From: Cyanophora paradoxa CCMP329
Lineage: Eukaryota > Plantae > Glaucophyta
Direction: 5' to 3'
Assembly: GCA_004431415.1 (NCBI GenBank)
Contig: QPMI01000221.1
Location: 1-64,000 of the forward strand
DNA: 64,000 bases
The notes beneath the pieces were generated by a model. That model saw only the letters and a program-made list of their open reading frames with translations, searched no databases and was not told the DNA's origin. Each line of letters starts with the position of its first letter. Positions within the stretch are counted from its first letter, which is position 1. Below, piece by piece: positions 34,791 through 64,000 of this stretch. The position numbers and the translations under genes were made by a program.

Positions 34791-34990
34791 TGTAGGACGG
34801 CTTTTTTAACTGTAGTTTTAAATTGCCGTAAATTGCCGAGAGGCCGAATTCGGCAATTTTATAATTGAGCATCGGCAATGTTGCTGGGGGTAGGGGGTTT
34901 CTTAGCCCGCCATAGAGCGAAAGTCTGATTCCGAGTGATTCGGCAATCATTGAATTTATCGCCACGGCAATTCCGGTTTTGGGCGAATTT
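34791..34990 (+). mobile_element. Partial CTGTAGG-TIR MITE copy lacking the Helentron insertion (empty-site paralog)
   Basis: Aligns by eye with the reverse complement of 39351-39522 and continues across the insertion point (GGCAATTCCGGTTTT). Confidence 0.75.
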
Positions 34991-35284
34991 ACTAAGGTAT
35001 ACCGTATATATATACGTCACGGTATAGATCATGTGCCGCAGATGATGTGCGCCAAAGTACGTTATATATACGTTACCCAAGCACGAAGTTACTTATAATA
35101 TATTAATTAAAATACCAGTACCCGGTGACCGTGGATGCGCAATTGCAAGCTTCAAAGGCTTCGAATTCATGCCATGATGATTATGAATCATGATGAAGCC
35201 TACCGTGCACGTAACACTATATTATGACGGTCAAATTTATGTCGATATAAAACCCGACCCTTCTCTACTAGGCTATGCGAAATA

Positions 35285-38200
35285 CTGTAGGAATGCTTAA
35301 ATTGCCGCGTAGTTAAATTGCCGAATTCGACCAAAACCGGAACAAGATCCGTGCTCCTGCGGAGCACTAAGTACGGCGAAGCCTCGCGGACGCCCTCGCG
35401 GCTGTCACAGTAGGAGGCCAGCTGGACCCGGCCCCGCCCAGCTGCATGGCCGGGTTTCGCCGGCTTGGCACCGGCCATGGGCTGGCCCGCTTTAGCCAGC
35501 TCGAGGGAGAGCTGGCTGGCCAGAGAGCAATGTAATGAGGAGAGGAATATATAATTAACTAGGGGAGACCGGAGTTGAACCGGTAACGCTTGCTTTTAAC
35601 TGGTGGAGCAGATTGAGAGGAGATTAACTATATAATATTGTTGGAGGGAGGCCGCCGGGCCTGGAGGGGCGAGGTTCTCGCGGCCAGGCGCATGCACAGA
35701 GCTTGGGAATCGCTTAAACAGAATCTAGAATGCATATAGCATCGATGTGCAGGGGTGCGGAGGCAAGGGCACACGGAAAGCTTTGCAGGCCTGGCCAGGA
35801 TCGAATTTTCGGGTCGGCTGGATTCTCGCGCCCTGTCGCATCTCTAGAGTTCGCGAAAAGCTTGACAAAGATCTCAAACTACTGTTGTAGGGATGCGCAC
35901 GCGTGAGGATGCGAGGGCGCGCGGAAAGCTGTGCAGGTCCGTCCAGGATCGAATTTTCGGCGTCGGCTGGGTCCTCGCGGCCGGCGCATTTAGAGACCGT
36001 GCGGAATGCTTTGTCTACATCTCAAATGCTTATGCTATCGTTCCGCGCATGCGCCGCGGCGTTGGCGCGCGGAAAGCTGTCCAGGTTTGTGCAGGATCGA
36101 ATTTTTGATGTCCGTACCTTCTTGCGCTATTCCGGCTCCGAAAAGCAGATTTCGGGGTGCGCAGGCCCTGCTATGTCTATGCGCGCCAGTACGCATCGAA
36201 TGCGCGCCTCGCGGAACCGGCCGGAACCGGCCGGATCAAATTTTCGCCTACTGTTCGGACTGGAGCGTTGACGGCGCCCGAAATCGAGCTTGCGTCGATG
36301 CGCTCGCCCTCGCCGTCACTCTTTATCGTTCTGGGGCGTCCCTGGCGCGATTTCGTCGCGGGACCGGGCGGGACCGGGTCCCACCTTCTGACCTGGACTG
36401 CATTTGTCGGAGGTTAAGGACCGGATTTGATCCAGAGGGAAATTTGATATTCGCGCGACGCCCACGGGGAGCGGTCGTCTTAGGGAGCCAGGACGCTAAA
36501 AATGGATCTAGAGAGGTGTGTGGGGTTAGGGTAGCTGAGTCATTAGCGGCAATCGTGACCGTGTCGAGGCAGAATTAATAATTCTGCCTCGAGGAGTGCG
36601 ACACGGAAATTATTTATCAGGGGGATCTCGAGTGGAAAAAAAGGTTAAAAAAGGAATTTATATCGCGGTTTTTGGGTTTGAGACAAGATCCGTGCTCCTG
36701 CGGAGCACTAAGTACGGCGAAGCCTCGCGACGCCCTCGCGGCTGTCACAGTAGGCCTATAGGGCACTGGCCAGCGGCCTGGCCGATCGCGAACAGCTTTC
36801 TGGTTGGAAGCTGGCCGGCTGACGGCCAGTCCAGCTACCGCTGGCCGCTAGAGGAATATAACTAGAGGAATATTAATGTACTGAGGAAATAAAGGGAGGC
36901 CGGAGCAGGTTGAGATTAGAGGAGATGAATTATATATAATATTGTTGAGAGGGAGGCCGGGAGGGGCAAGGTTCTCGCGGCCAGGCGCATGCACAGAGCT
37001 TGCGAATCGCTTAAACAGAATCTTGAATGCATATAGCTATAGCATCGATGTGCGGGGCTGCGGAGCTCGAGGCGAGGGCGCGCGGAAAGATGTGCAGGTC
37101 CATGCAGGATCGAATTTTCGGGTCGGCTGGGTCCTCGCGGCCCGTCGCATACGCAAAGCGTGCGGAAGACTTTGCCTACATCTTAAATGCTTATGCTATC
37201 GTTCGCGCATGCGCCGCGGCGTGGGCGCGCGGAAAGATGTCAGGGCGCGTGCAGGATCGAATTTTGGCCGTCGGGTACCTTCCTGCGCTGTTCCGGCTCC
37301 GAAAAGCGGATTTCGGGGTGCGCAGGCCCTGCTATGTCCATGCGCGCCAGTACGCATCGATTGCGCGCGTCGCGGACCGGGCGGGACCGGCTAGCGCTGG
37401 ATCAAATTTCGGCCGACTCTTCGCACTGGAGCGTCGACGGCGCTTGAAATCGAGCTTGCGGCGATGCGCTCGCCCTCGCGCGGCATTCTGTATCGTTCTG
37501 GGGCGTCCCTGGCGCGATTTCGTCGCGGGACCGGCGGGACCGGGTCCACCTTCTGACTCGGACTGCATTTGTCGGAGGTTAAGTACCGGAATTGATCCAG
37601 AGGGAAATTCGATTTTCGCGCGACGCCCACGGGCGAGCGGTCGTCTTAGGGGAGCCACGACGCTAAAAATGGATCTAGAGAGGTCTGTGGGGGTTAGGGT
37701 AGCTGAGTCATTAGCGGCAATCGCGTCCGTGTCGAGGCAGAATTAATAATTCGTCCTCGAGGGAGTGCGACGCGGAAATTATTTAGCAGGGGGATCTTGA
37801 GTGGAAAAAAAGGTTAAAAAAGGAATTTATATCGGCGGTTTTTGGTTTGAGACAAGATCCGTGCTCCTGCGGAGCACTAAGTACGGCGAAGCCTCGCGGA
37901 CGCCCTCGCGGCTGTCACAGTAGGAGGCCAGCTGGACCCGCCCCGCCCAGCTGCATGGCCGGGTTTCGCCGGCTTGGCACCGGCCATGGGCTGGCCCGCT
38001 TTAGCCAGCTCGAGGGAGAGCTGGCTGGCCAGAGAGCAATGTAATGAGGAGAGGGAATATATAATTAACTAGGGGAGACCGGAGTTGAACCGGTAACGCT
38101 TGCTTTTAACTGGTGGAGCAGATTGAGAGGAGATTAACTATATAATATTGTTGGGAGGGAGGCCGCCGGGCCTGGGAGGGGCGAGGTTCTCGCGGCCAGG

Positions 38201-39522
38201 CGCATGCACAGAGCTTGGGAATCGCTTAAACAGAATCTAGAATGCATATAGCATCGATGTGCAGGGGTGCGGAGGCAAGGGCACACGGAAAGCTTTGCAG
38301 GCCTGGCCAGGATCGAATTTTCGGGGTCGGCTGGATTCTCGCGCCCTGTCGCATCTCTAGAGTTCGCGAAAAGCTTGACAAAGATCTCAAACTACTGTTG
38401 TAGGGATGCGCACGCGTGAGGATGCGAGGGCGCGCGGAAAGCTGTGCAGGTCCGTCCAGGATCGAATTTTCGGCGTCGGCTGGGTCCTCGCGGCCCGGCG
38501 CATTTAGAGACCGTGCGGAATGCTTTGTCTACATCTCAAATGCTTATACTATTGCTCCGCGCATGCGCCGCGGCGTTGGCGCGCGGAAAGCTGTCCAGGT
38601 TTGTGCAGGATCGAATTTTTGATGTCCGGTACCTTCTTGCGCTATTCCGGCTCCGAAAAGCAGATTTCGGGGTGCGCAGGCCCTGCTATGTCTATGCGCG
38701 CCAGTACGCATCGAATGCGCGCCTCGCGGAACCGGCCGGAACCGGCCGGATCAAATTTTCGGCCTACTGTTCGGACTGGAGCGTTGACGGCGCCCGAAAT
38801 CGAGCTTGCGTCGATGCGCTCGCCCTCGCCCGTCACTCTTTATCGTTCTGGGGCGTCCCTGGCGCGATTTCGTCGCGGGACCGGCGGGACCGGGTCCCAC
38901 CTTCTGACCTGGACTGCATTTGTCGGAGGTTAAGGACCGGATTTGATCCAGAGGGAAATTTGATATTCGCGCGACGCCCACGGGGAGCGGTCGTCTTAGG
39001 GAGCCAGGACGCTAAAAATGGATCTAGAGAGGTGTGTGGGGGTTAGGGTAGCTGAGTCATTAGCGGCAATCGTGACCGTGTCGAGGCAGAATTAATAATT
39101 CTGCCTCGAGGGAGTGCGACACGGAAATTATTTATCAGGGGGGATCTCGAGTGGAAAAAAAGGTTAAAAAAGGAATTTATATCGGCAGAATTAATAATTC
39201 TGCCTCGAGGGAGTGCGACACGGAAATTATTTATCAGGGGGGATCTCGAGTGGAAAAAAAGGTTAAAAAAGGAATTTATATCGGCGGTTTTTGGGTTTGA
39301 GAAAGAGGCTTCGCCTGAAAGAGGCTTCGCCTGAAAGAGGCTTCGCCTGATTGCCATGGCGATAAATTGCCGAAACGCTGGATTTCTTCTATGGCGCCAT
39401 ACAAAAGCGGTTGCTTACGCCTACCCCCTGAGCATTGCCGCGGCTCTAAATTGCCGAATTCGGCCTCTCGGCAATTAAATTTACGGCAATTTAAAACATC
39501 GGCTAAAAAAGCAATCCTACAG
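35285..39522 (-). mobile_element. Tc1/mariner-type MITE (TA TSD), split by the Helentron array
   Basis: TA|CTGTAGGAATGCTT ... AAGCAATCCTACAG|TA (13/14 TIR match); internal AAATTGCCG repeats on both sides of the insertion. Confidence 0.8.
35342..39349 (-). mobile_element. Non-autonomous Helentron/Helitron2 (HINE/DINE-1-like) trimer, bodies A-B-A
   Basis: Bodies start ACAAGATCC-GTGCTCC/TGC/GGAGCAC hairpin-GGCGAAGCCTC at 35342, 36683 and 37852. The far end carries three stacked AAAGAGGCTTCGCCTG (inverted subTIR). Inserted at AA/TT without TSD; no Rep/Hel ORF. Confidence 0.85.
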
Positions 39523-39797
39523 TATGACGGTCCCAAATAATTATGTCATTATGAAATTTCCGAGCTTGTCTGGGGCGGTCAATTGTATGCATGGGGCGAC
39601 TTACTATAGCCCGGGCCCGTTTTATGACGGTCCCAAATAATGTCGTTATGTCGTCATGTCCGAGGCGACATAATTTGGGGATGACATATTTAAGTGAGTG
39701 AGTGTTACACCGTTACCTGGGGCTTTAAGCCTTCAACTAGCTACTAGGCTAGCCTTCAAGCCTTCAACTTGGCTGCTGAATCAGTGCTGATCATGAC

Positions 39798-40652
39798 TAG
39801 GCCTGATGCTTGACCCCCCCCGGCTTCAAGCCAAGCCAAGCCAAATTTTGGCCTTCCGGAGTCAAGCCAAGCCAAGCACCCGAGCCGGCCGGCTCAAATG
39901 CTTGGCCCCTCGGCTAGGTCAAATATTTGTCAAATGCTTGAGGGGGGGGGTACCCCATGTACGCCCCATGCAGGTTGAAAAGCTGCGGCGGGCTCAGGCA
40001 GGGCCGGCCGCACACTGTGCGCGCGCGCGCCCGCATACCTCGTCGAGCCAGTGGATCGTGAAGCTGATGTACGACTTGCGCCCCTCGCGATCGCTCGTCC
40101 CGGAGAGTCCAGATATCGATGACGTCGACGTCGGACGTTGCAATTGCGTGCACGTGGCGCGTGCACACGTCGTATACGTAGATGCGGTTCGCGCCCTGAA
40201 ACAGCATCGATCTGACCGACTTCCGCTGGCGCGCGTGCTCCGCCAGGATGATCCGCCTGATCGTCCCGCGATCCGTCGGACGATAGCGCTAGCGCGCTAG
40301 CTTATATATAGCTTCTGCGGCCGAGTGAGCGGGCGTCGCGCGCGCGCGGGCCGGGCGGGCGCGCGCGGGGGCACGGAATTTTTCGAATGAGATGTTGCCG
40401 GACGCGTCCTTGCCGATGACTGACTGCGTGGATTTGCCCTTCTAGATCTCCTTCGGCGGCATTGCTGCTGGCTGCCTGGCTAGCGCTGAGCCTACTTCGC
40501 TGTGCCTAAGTATGGCCCTTCCCCCCCCTGCTCCCCCCCCCCCCCATAATATTTGCAAGTATCTTCAAGCACGGCTTTCTGGCTCAAATGCTTGGGGCTA
40601 GAGGTCAAGCCAAGTGCTTGAGGCAAATGCTTGACCCCAAGCAGCAGGCCTA
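39798..40652. mobile_element. Non-autonomous hAT element
   Basis: TIR TAGGCCTG(A/C)TGCTTG at both ends; perfect 8-bp TSD ATCATGAC (39790-97 and 40653-60); subterminal CAAGC(C) repeats. Confidence 0.9.
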
Positions 40653-41105
40653 ATCATGACATGATGACTCCGGATCCGGCGCCGGAACTTTCAAGTTTCG
40701 GAATTAAATCCCGGAGTCCGATCCGACGTCGATATTATTCGACGATATATCGACGTTAACGCGATCCCGGATTTCCGGAATATCAATCGATCCGGATTCC
40801 GGATCCGCGCCGATTCCGCGGACCCCATGGCCACGTGCACGGCCGGACTCCGGGATCGGCCCGGAATTCGAAAGAAGTTTTAAATAACAACAGGACATGC
40901 CATATATATATGCCATGATGTAAACATAATATATATAGTGATAAAAGCTTTTAAGTTTTAAAATTTGTGCGATCTATATATATAGATATATATATCACGC
41001 AAATATAGTGCTCAGAATTTCCCGCCTGCTAATTAATAATTATAAAGCCAAACGTCGACGTCGACGTGGACGATCAACCGACCGATCGCGAAGCACAAAG
41101 AATGT

Positions 41106-42300
41106 CAGGCGAAGCCTCTTTCTCAAACCCAAAAACCGCCGATATAAATTCCTTTTTTAACCTTTTTTTCCACTCAAGATCCCCCCCGCTAAATAATTTC
41201 CGCGTCGCACTCCCTCGAGGACGAATTATTAATTCTGCCTCGACACGGACGCGATTGCCGCTAATGACTCAGCTACCCTAACCCCCACAGACCTCTCTAG
41301 ATCCATTTTTAGCGTCGTGGCTCCCCTAAGACGACCGCTCGCCCGTGGGCGTCGCGCGAAAATCGAATTTCCCTCTGGATCAATTCCGGTACTTAACCTC
41401 CGACAAATGCAGTCCGAGTCAGAAGGTGGGACCCGGTCCCGCCCGGTCCCGCGACGAAATCGCGCCAGGGACGCCCAGAACGATACAGAATGCCGCGCGA
41501 GGGCGAGCGCATCGCCGCAAGCTCGATTTCAAGCGCCGTCGACGCTCCAGTGCGAAGAGTCGGCCGAAAATTTGATCCAGCGCTAGCCGGTCCCGCCCGG
41601 TCCCGCGACGCGCGCAATCGATGCGTACTGGCGCGCATGGACATAGCAGGGCCTGCGCACCCCGAAATCCGCTTTTCGGAGCCGGAACAGCGCAGGAAGG
41701 TACCCGACGGCCAAAATTCGATCCTGCACGCGCCCTGACATCTTTCCGCGCGCCCACGCCGCGGCGCATGCGCGGAACGATAGCATAAGCATTTAAGATG
41801 TAGGCAAAGTCTTCCGCACGCTTTGCGTATGCGACGGGCCGCGAGGACCCAGCCGACCCCGAAAATTCGATCCTGCATGGACCTGCACATCTTTCCGCGC
41901 GCCCTCGCCTCGAGCTCCGCAGCCCCGCACATCGATGCTATAGCTATATGCATTCAAGATTCTGTTTAAGCGATTCGCAAGCTCTGTGCATGCGCCTGGC
42001 CGCGAGAACCTTGCCCCTCCCGGGCCTCCCTCTCAACAATATTATATATAATTCATCTCCTCTAATCTCAACCTGCTCCGGCCTCCCTTTATTTCCTCAG
42101 TACATTAATATTCCTCTAGTTATATTCCTCTAGCCGGCCAGCGGTAGCTGGACTGGCCGTCAGCCGGCCAGCTTCCAACCAGAAAGCTGTTCGCGATCGG
42201 CCAGGCCGCTGGCCAGTGCCCTATAGGCCTACTGTGACAGCCGCGAGGGCGTCCGCGAGGCTTCGCCGTACTTAGTGCTCCGCAGGAGCACGGATCTTGT
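41106..42300 (+). mobile_element. Single complete Helentron-like (HINE) copy, type-B body
   Basis: T|CAGGCGAAGCCTCTTT ... GAGGCTTCGCC-GTACTTA-GTGCTCCGCAGGAGCAC-GGATCTTGT|TTTTT; inverted relative to 36683-37851. Confidence 0.9.
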
Positions 42301-59389: not shown

Positions 59390-62300
59390 CAGGCGAAGCC
59401 TCTTTCAGGCAAAGCCTCTTTCTCAAACCCAAAAACCGACGATCTAAATTCCTTTTTTAACCTTTTTTTCCACTCAAGATCCCCCCTGCTTAATAATTTC
59501 CGTGTCGCACTCCCTCGAGGCAGAATTAATAATTCTGCCTCGACACGGACGCGATTGCTGCTAGTCACTCAGCCACACGAACCCCCACAGACCTCTCTAG
59601 ATCCATTTTTAGCGTCGTAGCTGCCCTAAGACGACCGCTCCCCCGTAGGCATCCCGCGAAAATCGAATTTCCCTCTGGATCAATTCCGGTACTTAACCTC
59701 CGACAAATGCAGTCCGAGTCCGAAGGTGGGACCCGGTCCCGCCCGGTCCCGCGACGAAATCGCGCCAGGGACGCCCCAGAACGATACAGAATGACGCGCG
59801 AGGGCGAGCGCATCGCACTCCCTCGAGGCAGAATTAATAATTCTGCCTCGACACGGACGCGATTGCTGCTAGTCACTCAGCCACACGAACCCCCACAGAC
59901 CTCTCTAGATCCATTTTTAGCGTCGTAGCTGCCCTAAGACGACCGCTCCCCCGTAGGCATCCCGCGAAAATCGAATTTCCCTCTGGATCAATTCCGGTAC
60001 TTAACCTCCGACAAATGCAGTCCGAGTCCGAAGGTGGGACCCGGTCCCGCCCGGTCCCGCGACGAAATCGCGCCAGGGACGCCCCAGAACGATACAGAAT
60101 GACGCGCGAGGGCGAGCGCATCGCCGCAAGCTCGATTTCGGGCGCCGTCGACGCTCCAGTGCGAAGAGTCGGCCGAAAATTTGATCCGGCCGGATCCCCC
60201 CTGCTTAATAATTTCCGTGTCGCACTCCCTCGAGGCAGAATTAATAATTCTGCCTCGACACGGACGCGATTGCTGCTAGTCACTCAGCCACACGAACCCC
60301 CACAGACCTCTCTAGATCCATTTTTAGCGTCGTAGCTGCCCTAAGACGACCGCTCCCCCGTAGGCATCCCGCGAAAATCGAATTTCCCTCTGGATCAATT
60401 CCGGTACTTAACCTCCGACAAATGCAGTCCGAGTCCGAAGGTGGGACCCGGTCCCGCCCGGTCCCGCGACGAAATCGCGCCAGGGACGCCCCAGAACGAT
60501 ACAGAATGACGCGCGAGGGCGAGCGCATCGCCGCAAGCTCGATTTCGGGCGCCGTCGACGCTCCAGTGCGAAGAGTCGGCCGAAAATTTGATCCGGCCGG
60601 TTCCGGCCGGTCCCGCGACGCGCGCAATCCATGCGTACTGGCGCGCATAGACATAGCAGCGCCTGCGCACCCCCGAAATCCGCTTTTCGGAGCCGGAAGA
60701 GCGCAGGAAGGTACCCGACGGCAAAAATTCGATCCTAGACAGGCCCGGAGATCTTTCCGCGCGCCCACGCCGCGGCGCATGCGCGGAACGATAGCATAAG
60801 CATTTGAGATGTAGACAAAGCATTCCGCACGCTTTACAGATGCGCCGGACCGCGGGGACCCAGCCGACCCCGAAAATTCGATCCTTCACGGACCTGCACA
60901 TCTTTCCGCGCGCCCTCGCATCCTCACGCGAGCGCATCGCTACAGTATTCAGTTGAGATCTTTTTAAAGCTTTTCGCAAGCTCTGCGGGCGCGACAGGGC
61001 ACGAGAACCCAGCCGACGCAAAAATTCGATCCTGAACGGGCCTGCACATCTTTCCGCGCGCCCACGCCGCGGCGCATGCTCAGAGCTTTCCGCGCGCCCT
61101 CGCATCGTCACGCGAGCGCATCGCTACAATATGCATTTGAGATCGTTTTAAAGCTTTCCGCGAGCTCTGCGGGCGCGACAGCGCACGACAACCCAGCCGA
61201 CGCCAAAAATTCGATCCTGGCCACGCCTGCACATCTTTCCGCGCGCCCTCGCCTCCGCAGCCCCGCACATCGATGCTATATGCATTCGCTGGCCAGTCGC
61301 TGAGTGCCCTATAGGCCTACTGTGACAGCCGCGAGGGCGTCCGCGAGGCTTCGCCGTACTTAGTGCTCCGCAGGAGCACGGATCTTGTCTCAAACCCAAA
61401 AACCGCCGACCGAAATTCCTTTTTTAACCTTTTTTTCTACTCGAGATCCCCCCTGCTAAATAATTTCCGTGTCACACTCCCTCGAAGCAGAATTGTTAAT
61501 TCTGCCTCGACACGGACGCGATTGATGGACATTACACAGCTGCCCGAACCGCCACAGACCCCTCTAGATCCATTTTTAGCGTCCTAGCTCCCCTAAGACG
61601 ACCGCTCGCCCGTGGGCGTCGCACGACATCGAATTTCCCTCTGGATCAATTCCGGTACTTAACCTCCGACAAATGCAGTCCGAGTCAGAAGGTGGGACCC
61701 GGTCCCGCCCGGTCCCGCGACGAAATCGCGCCAGGGACGCCCCAGAACGATACAGAATGACGCGCGAGGGCGAGCGCATCGCCGCAAACTCGGTTTCGGG
61801 CGCCCTCGACGCTCCAGTGCAAACAGTCGGCCGAAATTTTGATCCGGCCGGTTCCGGCCGGTCCCGCGACGCGCGCAATCGATGCGCACTAGCGCGCATA
61901 GGCATAGCAGGGCCTGCGCACCCCCGAAATCCGGTTTTCGGAGCCGGAACAGCGCAGGAAGGTACCCGACGGCAAAAATTCGATCCCACACGGGCCCGGA
62001 CATCTTTCCGCGCGCCCACGCCGCGGCGCACGCGCGGAACGATAGCATAAGCATTTGAGATGTAGAAGAAGACTTCCGCACGGTCTCTAAATGCACCAGG
62101 CCGCGAGGACCCAGCCGACCCCGAAAATTCGATCCTGGACGGACCTGAACATCTTTCCGCGCACCCTCGCATTCTTGCGCATGCATCGCTACAATATTCA
62201 TTTGAGATTTTATCAAAGCCTTCCACAAGCTTCGAAGACGCGAAAGAGCACGAGAACCCAGCGGACGGCAAAAAGTCGATCCTGCACGGACCCGGACATC

Positions 62301-64000
62301 TTTCCGCGCGCCCACGCCGCGGCGCATGCGCGGAACAATAGCATAAGCATTTGAGATGTAGACAAAGCATTCCGCACGGTTTACGGATGCGCCGGGCCGC
62401 GAGGACCCAGCCGACCCCGAAAATTCGATCCTTCACGGACCTGCACGTCTTTCCGCGCGCCCTCGCATCCTCACGCAAGCACATCGCTACTATATTCATT
62501 TGGGATTTTATCAAAGCCTTCCACAAGCTTCGAAGACGCGAAAGAGCACGAGAACCCAGCCGGCGGCAAAAATTCGATCCTGCACGGGCCCGGACATCTT
62601 TCCGCGCGCCCACGCCGCGGTGCATGCGCGGAACAATAGCATAAGCATTTGAGATGTAGAAGAAGCCTTCCGCACGCTTTACGGATGCGCCGGGCCGCGG
62701 GGACCCAGCCGACCCCGAAAATTCGATCCTGGACAGACCTGCACATCTTTCCGCGCGCCCTCGCATCCTCACGCACGGGCATCGCTACAATATTCATCAG
62801 AGATGTTTTAAAAGCCTTTCGCAAGCTCTGCGGACGCAACAGGGCGCGGCAATCCAGCCGACGCAAAAATTCGATCCTGGCCACGCCTGCACATCTTTCC
62901 GCGCGCCCTCGCCTCCGCAGCCCTACACATCGATGCTATATGCATTCGAATTCGAGATTCTGTTTAAGCGATTCGCGAGATCTGTGCATGCGCCTGGCCG
63001 CGAGAACCTCGCCCCTCCCGGGCCTCCTTCCCAACAATATTATATAATTAATCTCCTCTCAATCTGCTCCACCCTTTATTTCCTCAGTACATTAATATTC
63101 CTCTAGCCGGCCAGCGCTAGCTGGACTGGCCGTCAGCCAGCCAGCTTCCAGCCAGAAAGCTGTTCGCGATCGGCCAGGCCGCTGGCCAGCCTGGCAGTCG
63201 GTGAATGCCCTGTAGGCCTACTGTGACAGCCGCGAGGGCGTCCGCGAGGCTTCGCCGTACTTAGTGCTCCGCAGGAGCACGGATCTTGTCTCAAACCCAA
63301 AAACCGACGATCTAAATTCCTTTTTTAACCTTTTTTTCCACTCGAGATCCCCCCTGCTAAATAATTTCCGTGTCGCACTCCCTCGAGGCAGAATTATTAA
63401 TTTTGCCTCGACACAGACGCGATTGCTGCTAGTCACACAGCCACCCGAACCCCCACAGACCTCTCTAGAGCCAATTTTAGCGTCCTGGCTCCCCTAAGAC
63501 GACCGCTCTCCCGTGGGCGTCGCGCGAATATCGAATATTCCTCTGGATCAATTCCGGTTCTTAACCTCCGACAAATCCAGTCCGAGTCAGAAGGTGGGAC
63601 CCGGTCCCGCCCGGTCCCGCGACAAAATCGCGCCAGGAACGCCCCAGAACGATACAGAATGACGCGCGAGGGCGAGCGCATCGCCGCAAACCCGATTTCG
63701 CGCGCCGTCGACGCTCCAGTGCGAAGAGTCGGCCGAAAATTTGATCCGGCCGGTTCCGGCCGGTCCCGCGACGCGCGCAATCGATGCGTACGGGCGCGCA
63801 TAGACATAGCAGCGCCTGCGCACCCCCGAAATCCGCTTTTCGGAGCCGGAAGAGCGCAGGAAGGTACCCGACGGCAAAAATTCGATCCTAGACAGGCCCG
63901 GAGATCTTTCCGCGCGCCCGCGCCGCGGCGCATGCGCGGAACGATAGCATAAGCATTTGAGATGTAGAAGAAGCCTTCCGCACGGTCTCTAAATGCGCCG
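59390..64000 (+). mobile_element. Helentron-like (HINE) array, at least 3 bodies with internal partial duplications; continues past window end
   Basis: TTTT|CAGGCGAAGCCTCTTT CAGGCAAAGCCTCTTT CTCAAA start; subTIR+hairpin+CTTGT ends at 61388 and 63289, each joined to CTCAAACCC. Confidence 0.88.

Follow-up and report, generated by a model that had tools for sequence, protein, structure and literature searches.

How do Helitron-type elements choose their targets, and how do tandem Helitron arrays and Helitron-derived satellites, which are usually accounted for as rolling-circle concatemers, come into being? Both questions are raised by a block of repeats on contig QPMI01000221.1 of the glaucophyte Cyanophora paradoxa CCMP329 (assembly GCA_004431415.1), of which positions 1 to 64,000 were analyzed; this whole stretch of 64,000 nucleotides (nt) is called the window below. 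In this block, three copies of the 16-bp 5' terminus of a non-coding transposon are stacked at one end, and three bodies of the same kind of element follow them head to tail with no terminus in between. The simplest explanation for this arrangement, and in our judgment probably the right one, is that whole elements inserted repeatedly at the junction between the terminus and the body of a copy that was already resident.

The block, here called array 1, runs along the minus strand from 39349 to 35342 and covers 4008 bp, with the three 16-mers first and the three bodies behind them. The 5' terminal units (CAGGCGAAGCCTCTTT; 39334-39349, 39318-39333, and 39302-39317, minus strand) are exact copies of one another. 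Tandem Repeats Finder (TRF) reports the stack as a repeat with a period of 16, 3.1 copies, and a 100% match, and a pattern search for the 16-mer over the whole window returned six matches where 0.05 would be expected. The body that adjoins the stacked termini, b1, belongs to what we term type A and is 1450 bp long (39301-37852, minus strand); it starts with CTCAAACC, ends with CTTGT, and contains a 99-bp tandem duplication (39085-39285). It is followed on the same strand by a middle body of a second type, B (b2, 1169 bp, 37851-36683), and by an outermost body which is again of type A (b3, 1341 bp, 36682-35342). The start of all three bodies is CTCAAACC and their end is GTGCTCCGCAGGAGCACGGATCTTGT, and both internal junctions read AGCACGGATCTTGT^CTCAAACC, the 3' end CTTGT being joined to the next body without a 16-mer between them. 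At these junctions a body starts with precisely the base found after the 16-mer in the innermost copy of the stack and in the solo copy nearby.

This solo copy lies on the plus strand (41106-42300) and consists of one 16-mer (41106-41121) and one type-B body (41122-42300), with GAATGT^ upstream of it and ^TTTTTG downstream. To this extent the first-pass annotation, which was made from the sequence alone, is borne out: its three stacked 16-bp termini with three bodies are confirmed by TRF, the pattern search, and the coordinates, CTTGT is joined directly to CTCAAA at both array 1 junctions as it had stated, and the copy at 41106 does possess a single terminus and a single body. Overlooked at that stage was a second array on the plus strand. 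Array 2 opens with two stacked 16-mers (59390-59421), the second of which (CAGGCAAAGCCTCTTT) carries a G>A change, and continues with at least three diverged bodies (59422-61388, 61389-63289, and 63290 to the window end at 64000, where the third is cut). Its junctions, CTTGT^CTCAAACC, are the same as those of array 1, and its bodies carry central repeats of 149/298 bp as well as internal duplications of 308/407 bp. The ratio of termini to bodies at the three loci in the window is therefore 3:3 for array 1, 1:1 for the solo copy, and 2 to at least 3 for array 2.

A comparison of the bodies shows that those standing side by side are not each other's closest kin. Bodies b1 and b3 are 99.8% alike, differing by three clustered substitutions, the 99-bp duplication, and homopolymer lengths, and b2 is 99.8% alike to the body of the solo copy (one or two substitutions depending on the alignment, plus homopolymer lengths), whereas types A and B are ~86% alike. 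Likeness among the three bodies of array 2 ranges from 83 to 94%, and between neighbouring units of the arrays from 76 to 94%. Contrary to what unequal crossing-over in a satellite would produce, the nearest relative of each unit is not its neighbour, and since b1 and b3 are of type A along their whole length, the A-B-A units are non-chimeric. The A-B-A order of body types had been noticed before and taken to support independent insertions; the order is upheld by the values above, and the interpretation has held as well, in that the bodies are arrivals from different subfamilies. Because the units are dissimilar, and each has a near-identical relative that is not its neighbour, they are not concatemers of one circle, and because the A-B-A units are not chimeric, they are not the product of one unequal exchange.

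Despite their different origins, the bodies meet at the same place. All four internal junctions in the window, counting both arrays, are identical to the base. There are 12,762 T^(T/C) sites on the two strands of the window, and the probability that four insertions would fall by chance on at most three junction sites is ~1e-14, a figure that presumes that the bodies arrived independently.

The site that array 1 occupies as a whole can be read by comparison with an empty one. Its host is a small inverted-repeat element rich in GGCAATT/AATTGCC motifs (34800-35341 and 39350-39560), one arm of which contains the array. Read on the minus strand, the host-repeat flank upstream of the array (39350-39560) ends with GGCAAT and the downstream flank (35150-35341) starts with TCCGGTTTTGG, and the opposite arm of the host element holds the paralogous empty site GGCAAT^TCCGG on the plus strand (34953-34989, with T^T at 34971/34972). 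The empty site has the form ...TTTATCGCCACGGCAAT^TCCGGTTTTGGGCG..., as against ...TTTATCGCCATGGCAAT[CAGGCG ... CTTGT]TCCGGTTTTGGTCG... in the filled one, and a joint that skips 35342-39349, with a one-base ambiguity, is present in Illumina-based contigs of four public runs from the same organism. Since the 16-mers are absent from the empty site, they are part of the mobile DNA; this rules out the 16-mer as a pre-existing landing pad, and the 16-mer copies are not a target-site duplication either, which would flank the insert on both sides. Empty and filled sites differ by the array alone, and there was therefore no target-site duplication. The empty site likewise identifies T^T as the ordinary target, and the flanks of the solo copy (TGT^ and ^TTTTT) agree with this. 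Insertion at T^T or T^(T/C) without target-site duplication is the behaviour of Helitron2- and HINE-like elements, the former having been reported to insert at T^(T/C) (PMC13085455), and the bond behind the 16-mer is T^C. The read contigs also hold several diverged paralogues of the host inverted-repeat element. At the solo copy, GCGAAGC, the mini-hairpin core of the element's own terminus, is found 11 nt before the insertion site (41080-41105), possibly by coincidence.

The identity of the element itself can be judged from its ends and its body. The 16-mer contains an 11-bp 5' subterminal inverted repeat (subTIR), GGCGAAGCCTC, which starts at base 3 of the 16-mer (CAGGCG...), or at base 4 if the preceding T is counted, the boundary being uncertain by 1 nt. 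The inverted repeat thus lies within 0-4 nt of the 5' end, as in Helitron2- and HINE-like elements. Its partner, the 3' subTIR GAGGCTTCGCC (in b3 at 35375-35385, minus strand), matches the 5' subTIR as an exact 11-bp reverse complement; counted from the 3' end it spans nt 44-34, again a Helitron2/HINE-like position, and is present in six of the six complete bodies. A 3' hairpin, GTGCTCC-GCA-GGAGCAC, stands 9 nt before the 3' end GGATCTTGT (in b3 at 35351-35367, minus strand), within the expected range of 8-35 nt, and is predicted in both copies that were folded. At the other end, the 5' hairpin AGGC-GAA-GCCT within the 16-mer is the predicted minimum-energy fold. The G>A change in the variant 16-mer of array 2 sits in the loop of this hairpin, and no covariation of that 16-mer with a 3' subTIR was seen. 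The bodies contain the central 149/298-bp tandem repeats and appear to be non-coding, as is usual for such elements: their open reading frames (ORFs) gave no significant match to Pfam, where one weak hit fell below the gathering cut-off, and a Pfam search of 20 long ORFs of the window found neither a Rep/helicase nor any other secure domain. A complete unit is composed of the 16-nt 5' terminus, a non-coding body, the 3' subTIR, the 3' hairpin, and the end GGATCTTGT.

Judged by its sequence, the element belongs among the non-coding, non-autonomous rolling-circle transposons of the Helitron2/Helentron type, a class that is set here by the ends and the anatomy of the body, while a transposase would be needed to separate a Helentron, with its endonuclease, from a Helitron2. 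It had previously been described as Helentron-like, and the part of this description that stands is the Helitron2/Helentron type of the ends, namely the subTIR pair, the hairpins, and the T^T target; the preference for Helentron over Helitron2 goes further than these ends do. A canonical Helitron (Helitron1) was considered and rejected, as the 3' end CTTGT, the 11-bp subTIR pair, and the T^T target stand against the TC...CTRR ends, the lack of terminal inverted repeats, and the A^T target of that class. The element family is young and abundant. Between 1600 and 3400 contigs per public run map to 4.5 kb of the array 1 region, and word depth over array 1 is two to three orders above that of a unique flank contig, although depth does not equal copy number and, with contigs that fit several places possibly being spread unevenly, depth ratios between bins are unreliable. 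Exact scans found no instance of the 3' end pattern in viral and metagenome contigs and none of the terminus-body junction pattern in metagenome contigs, and a lookup of one body ORF by identity and by homology returned no record and no hit.

Both the stacked termini and the terminus-less junctions are explained by one process, the insertion of whole elements at the junction between 16-mer and body. Ordinary insertions would enter T^T without duplication, but the element would also have a strongly preferred target, the T^C bond that a resident copy presents immediately after its 5' hairpin, GCCTCTTT^CTCAAA. A whole new element would land there, between the resident's terminus and its body, such that, writing T for a terminus and B for a body, T B would become T[T B]B and then T T[T B]B B. 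Termini would accumulate on the left, and the bodies would form a head-to-tail series on the right that is uninterrupted by termini. The transposase may pick this bond since the sequence GCC-TCTTT^C behind the hairpin resembles the joined ends of the element, GGA-TCTTGT^C, which also stand behind a hairpin; the joined ends contain the bond that the transposase would cut in a circular intermediate. Insertion would be strand-specific, which would place all units in one orientation. The counts at two of the three loci (3:3 and 1:1) agree with the one-to-one rule that this scheme yields in its simplest form. Strict equality of termini and bodies, however, which the first-pass annotation had put forward together with nesting at the resident 5' end, fails because array 2 has two termini and at least three bodies. 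The nesting itself is retained as the probable explanation, on the strength of junctions at the same base and of bodies that arrived independently. The count may have been loosened later by slippage of the 16-bp stack and by remobilisation from any of the stacked 5' ends to any 3' end; a composite mobilised from its inner 5' end to its outer 3' end would, for instance, be left with one terminus and two bodies. Terminus-less copies, nicked at the T^C behind the hairpin, could possibly have contributed as well.

Several observations weigh against nesting. Array 2, with two termini for at least three bodies, requires a process in addition to the simple model. The evidence base consists of three loci, among which no intermediate states or strain polymorphisms were seen, and array 1 is known from one long-read assembly with visible consensus errors. 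The partner transposase is missing from what the window shows, and the predicted 5' hairpin has little thermodynamic stability (-2.1 kcal/mol, z = -0.8). Finally, the junction between two stacked termini should be as good a mimic of the joined ends as that between terminus and body, yet no body-to-terminus junction was seen, an absence that carries little weight given that only about two informative choices were available.

Among the alternatives, the one that survives best, though we consider it unlikely, divides the pattern between two processes. The 16-bp stack would vary by replication slippage, the bodies would be added separately as terminus-less units, derived either from circles nicked at the terminus-body bond or from a transposase-mediated exchange between a 3' end and that bond, and the 3:3 count of array 1 would be a coincidence. 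The unequal count of array 2 (two termini, at least three bodies) is what this would lead one to expect, other tandem duplications are common in the family (99, 149/298, and 308/407 bp), and the terminus-body bond is T^C, as at a true 5' nick site. Against this, two ad hoc processes are called upon where one suffices, and neither the 3:3 nor the 1:1 count is predicted. The terminus-less units must, moreover, still land exactly at the terminus-body bond, meaning that self-targeting remains part of the explanation, and the other duplications have microhomology breakpoints at varied places, in contrast to the four identical junctions.

An improbable alternative, to which we give less credence than to the preceding one, is that a composite of three termini and three bodies was formed elsewhere and later moved, in a single transposition, into the T^T of the host repeat. 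The empty site does show the whole 4008-bp block between T and T, and mobilisation from the outer 5' end has been proposed for the FoHeli elements of Fusarium, which are discussed below. This account merely moves the question, however, as the composite would itself still require either nesting or the two-process origin, and b2 is near-identical to the solo copy only 3.3 kb away, which recent local events fit equally well.

It is very improbable that the array is an assembly artefact in which the long-read assembler fused near-identical copies belonging to different loci. Polishing of the region does appear to have been poor. In 11 homopolymer runs each, b2 and b3 are one base shorter than their sister copies (the solo copy and b1, respectively), and short-read contigs of four runs restore the missing bases at the b2 sites, with one row at a b3 site. 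Because the bases are restored at the same places, we regard these 1-bp differences between sister copies as long-read consensus errors, and the interval 35342-37851 was probably left unpolished, short reads not being placeable among identical copies. A false join would nevertheless be expected within homologous sequence, rather than at a perfect stack of three termini or at exact-end junctions, and the architecture of array 1 is found again, with diverged units, at 59390. Rolling-circle concatemers of one circle, or tandem duplication by unequal crossing-over, can be set aside with near certainty despite being the usual explanation for tandem Helitron arrays in other organisms, since concatemers would have a terminus at every junction, the ground on which they had been excluded from the outset, and identical units, while here no junction carries a 16-mer and neighbours are 76-94% alike, and since unequal exchange between A and B would have left chimeric units, while b1 and b3 are of type A from end to end. 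Another route that was rejected, in which a circle recombines homologously with a resident copy, would leave a terminus at each junction.

Beyond nesting as such, we tentatively propose, as something possible rather than probable, that the transposase has a true sequence- and structure-specific site composed of its own 5' hairpin and TCTTT^C, a combination that imitates the joined ends of the circle. Resident copies would then act as a safe landing pad on which satellite-like arrays are built one element at a time, and the same mechanism could underlie "mobile satellites" such as MSAT-11_cRei. Array 1 is informative in this respect in that it retains both the stacked starts and the stacked unlike bodies, by which concatemers are excluded and base-precise self-targeting next to the 5' hairpin is indicated. 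Should this be true genome-wide, the hairpin plus TCTTT^C would constitute a testable transposase substrate, insertion behind it would represent a "safe haven" strategy for a rolling-circle element, and arrays of this kind would mark a stepwise route from transposon to satellite. Given the processes that could loosen the count, termini and bodies should be correlated genome-wide rather than match identically. Annotation tools that expect one 5' end per 3' end would mis-annotate such arrays.

Some further features of the window may be recorded here. The element family duplicates at many scales besides that of the whole element, as seen in the internal duplications of 99, 308, and 407 bp; the latter two are located in the first body of array 2 (59505-60604) and have microhomology breakpoints, e.g., GATCC. 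Between array 1 and the solo copy, a stretch of ~870 bp (39795-40665) has imperfect inverted ends, CATGATTAGGCCTG ... CAGGCCTAGTCATG, with long G/C homopolymer tracts just inside them, and this may be another small transposon. The 20 searched ORFs of at least 300 aa in the window (between 3836 and 56275) are without a secure Pfam match; the genes of the window are probably split by many introns, with the GC-rich sequence giving long spurious ORFs.

A comparison with known systems shows both where the Cyanophora element belongs and where it departs from its relatives. The HINE/DINE-1 elements (Thomas et al. 2014, PMC4067079) share with it subTIRs of 11-15 bp whose distance to the end of the element is a few nt on the 5' side and tens of nt on the 3' side. 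They also share a short 3' palindrome, central tandem repeats, T-rich targets that are not duplicated, and a non-coding body (PMC4067079). Helentrons are defined by an endonuclease of the partner transposase, and nesting at a fixed site is not described in that paper. In Chlamydomonas, Helitron-1N1_CRe (Bao and Jurka 2013, PMC3627910) has a 5' asymmetric terminal inverted repeat (ATIR) 0-2 nt from its end which forms a 5' hairpin, and a 3' ATIR just upstream of a 3' hairpin, and it inserts after T and before T or C without target-site duplication, all of which resembles the element described here. No self-nesting has been reported for the non-autonomous Helitron2 families of Chlamydomonas (PMC3627910). 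Helitron-1N1_CRe differs in that TTTT before the insertion site is reportedly needed, whereas the Cyanophora sites are AAT^T, TGT^T, and TTTT^. A parallel for target choice exists in the HUH transposons of the IS200/IS605 type, in which a single-strand transposase picks its target by a short motif that is also needed beside the element's own end; these are bacterial elements of an unrelated class, with no helicase, and they are not known to form nesting arrays.

A lead of another kind is provided by the "mobile satellite" MSAT-11_cRei of Chlamydomonas reinhardtii, which has a monomer of ~1.9 kb, was reported without transposon features, and has inserted anew in laboratory lines, in lengths from 0.5 to >21 kb (PMC9940879, PMC9977147). 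Its monomer is similar to the Cyanophora bodies, which reach 1.9-2.0 kb, by size only, and identity of the two was rejected, as they come from different organisms. It is conceivable, from our analysis of the arrays described here, that a satellite survey could easily overlook a terminus of 16 nt which marks just one end of an array, singly or in a short stack.

The closest precedent is found among Helitron2-type elements of fungi, and the idea of self-insertion is already published for those of Fusarium and Metarhizium (PMC5148889). Copies of FoHeli in Fusarium oxysporum possess multiple 5' termini, which were explained by insertion of the element into itself and subsequent remobilisation (Chellapan et al. 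2016, PMC5148889). The duplicated 5' pieces comprise the first 31, 65, 73, or 85 nt, depending on the strain, and a three-copy tandem in Metarhizium acridum was described as "inserted into the 5' end twice" or else as the product of rolling-circle replication (PMC5148889). The Fusarium paper also proposes the mirror-image composite, with two termini and one body (PMC5148889). The likeness extends to the termini, since the 5' end of FoHeli1, TCAGCC-GAA-GGCTG, and that of the Cyanophora element, TCAGGC-GAA-GCCT, have in common an initial TC, a GC stem, and a GAA loop, and since FoHeli1 and FoHeli2, like the Cyanophora element, possess asymmetric terminal inverted repeats. The differences are equally clear. 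In FoHeli, pieces of 31-85 nt are found mostly before a single 3' end, while the repeated unit in Cyanophora is a minimal 16-nt hairpin; in the Cyanophora arrays, four events share an insertion site that does not vary by a single base, and the stack of termini and that of bodies have both been preserved. The host is also a different one, an alga. Moreover, the unlike bodies in Cyanophora exclude the rolling-circle alternative that was left open in the Fusarium paper. What is new here is therefore a site fixed to the base behind a minimal hairpin, its use in four independent events, an intact record of the double stack, and bodies that are unlike one another.

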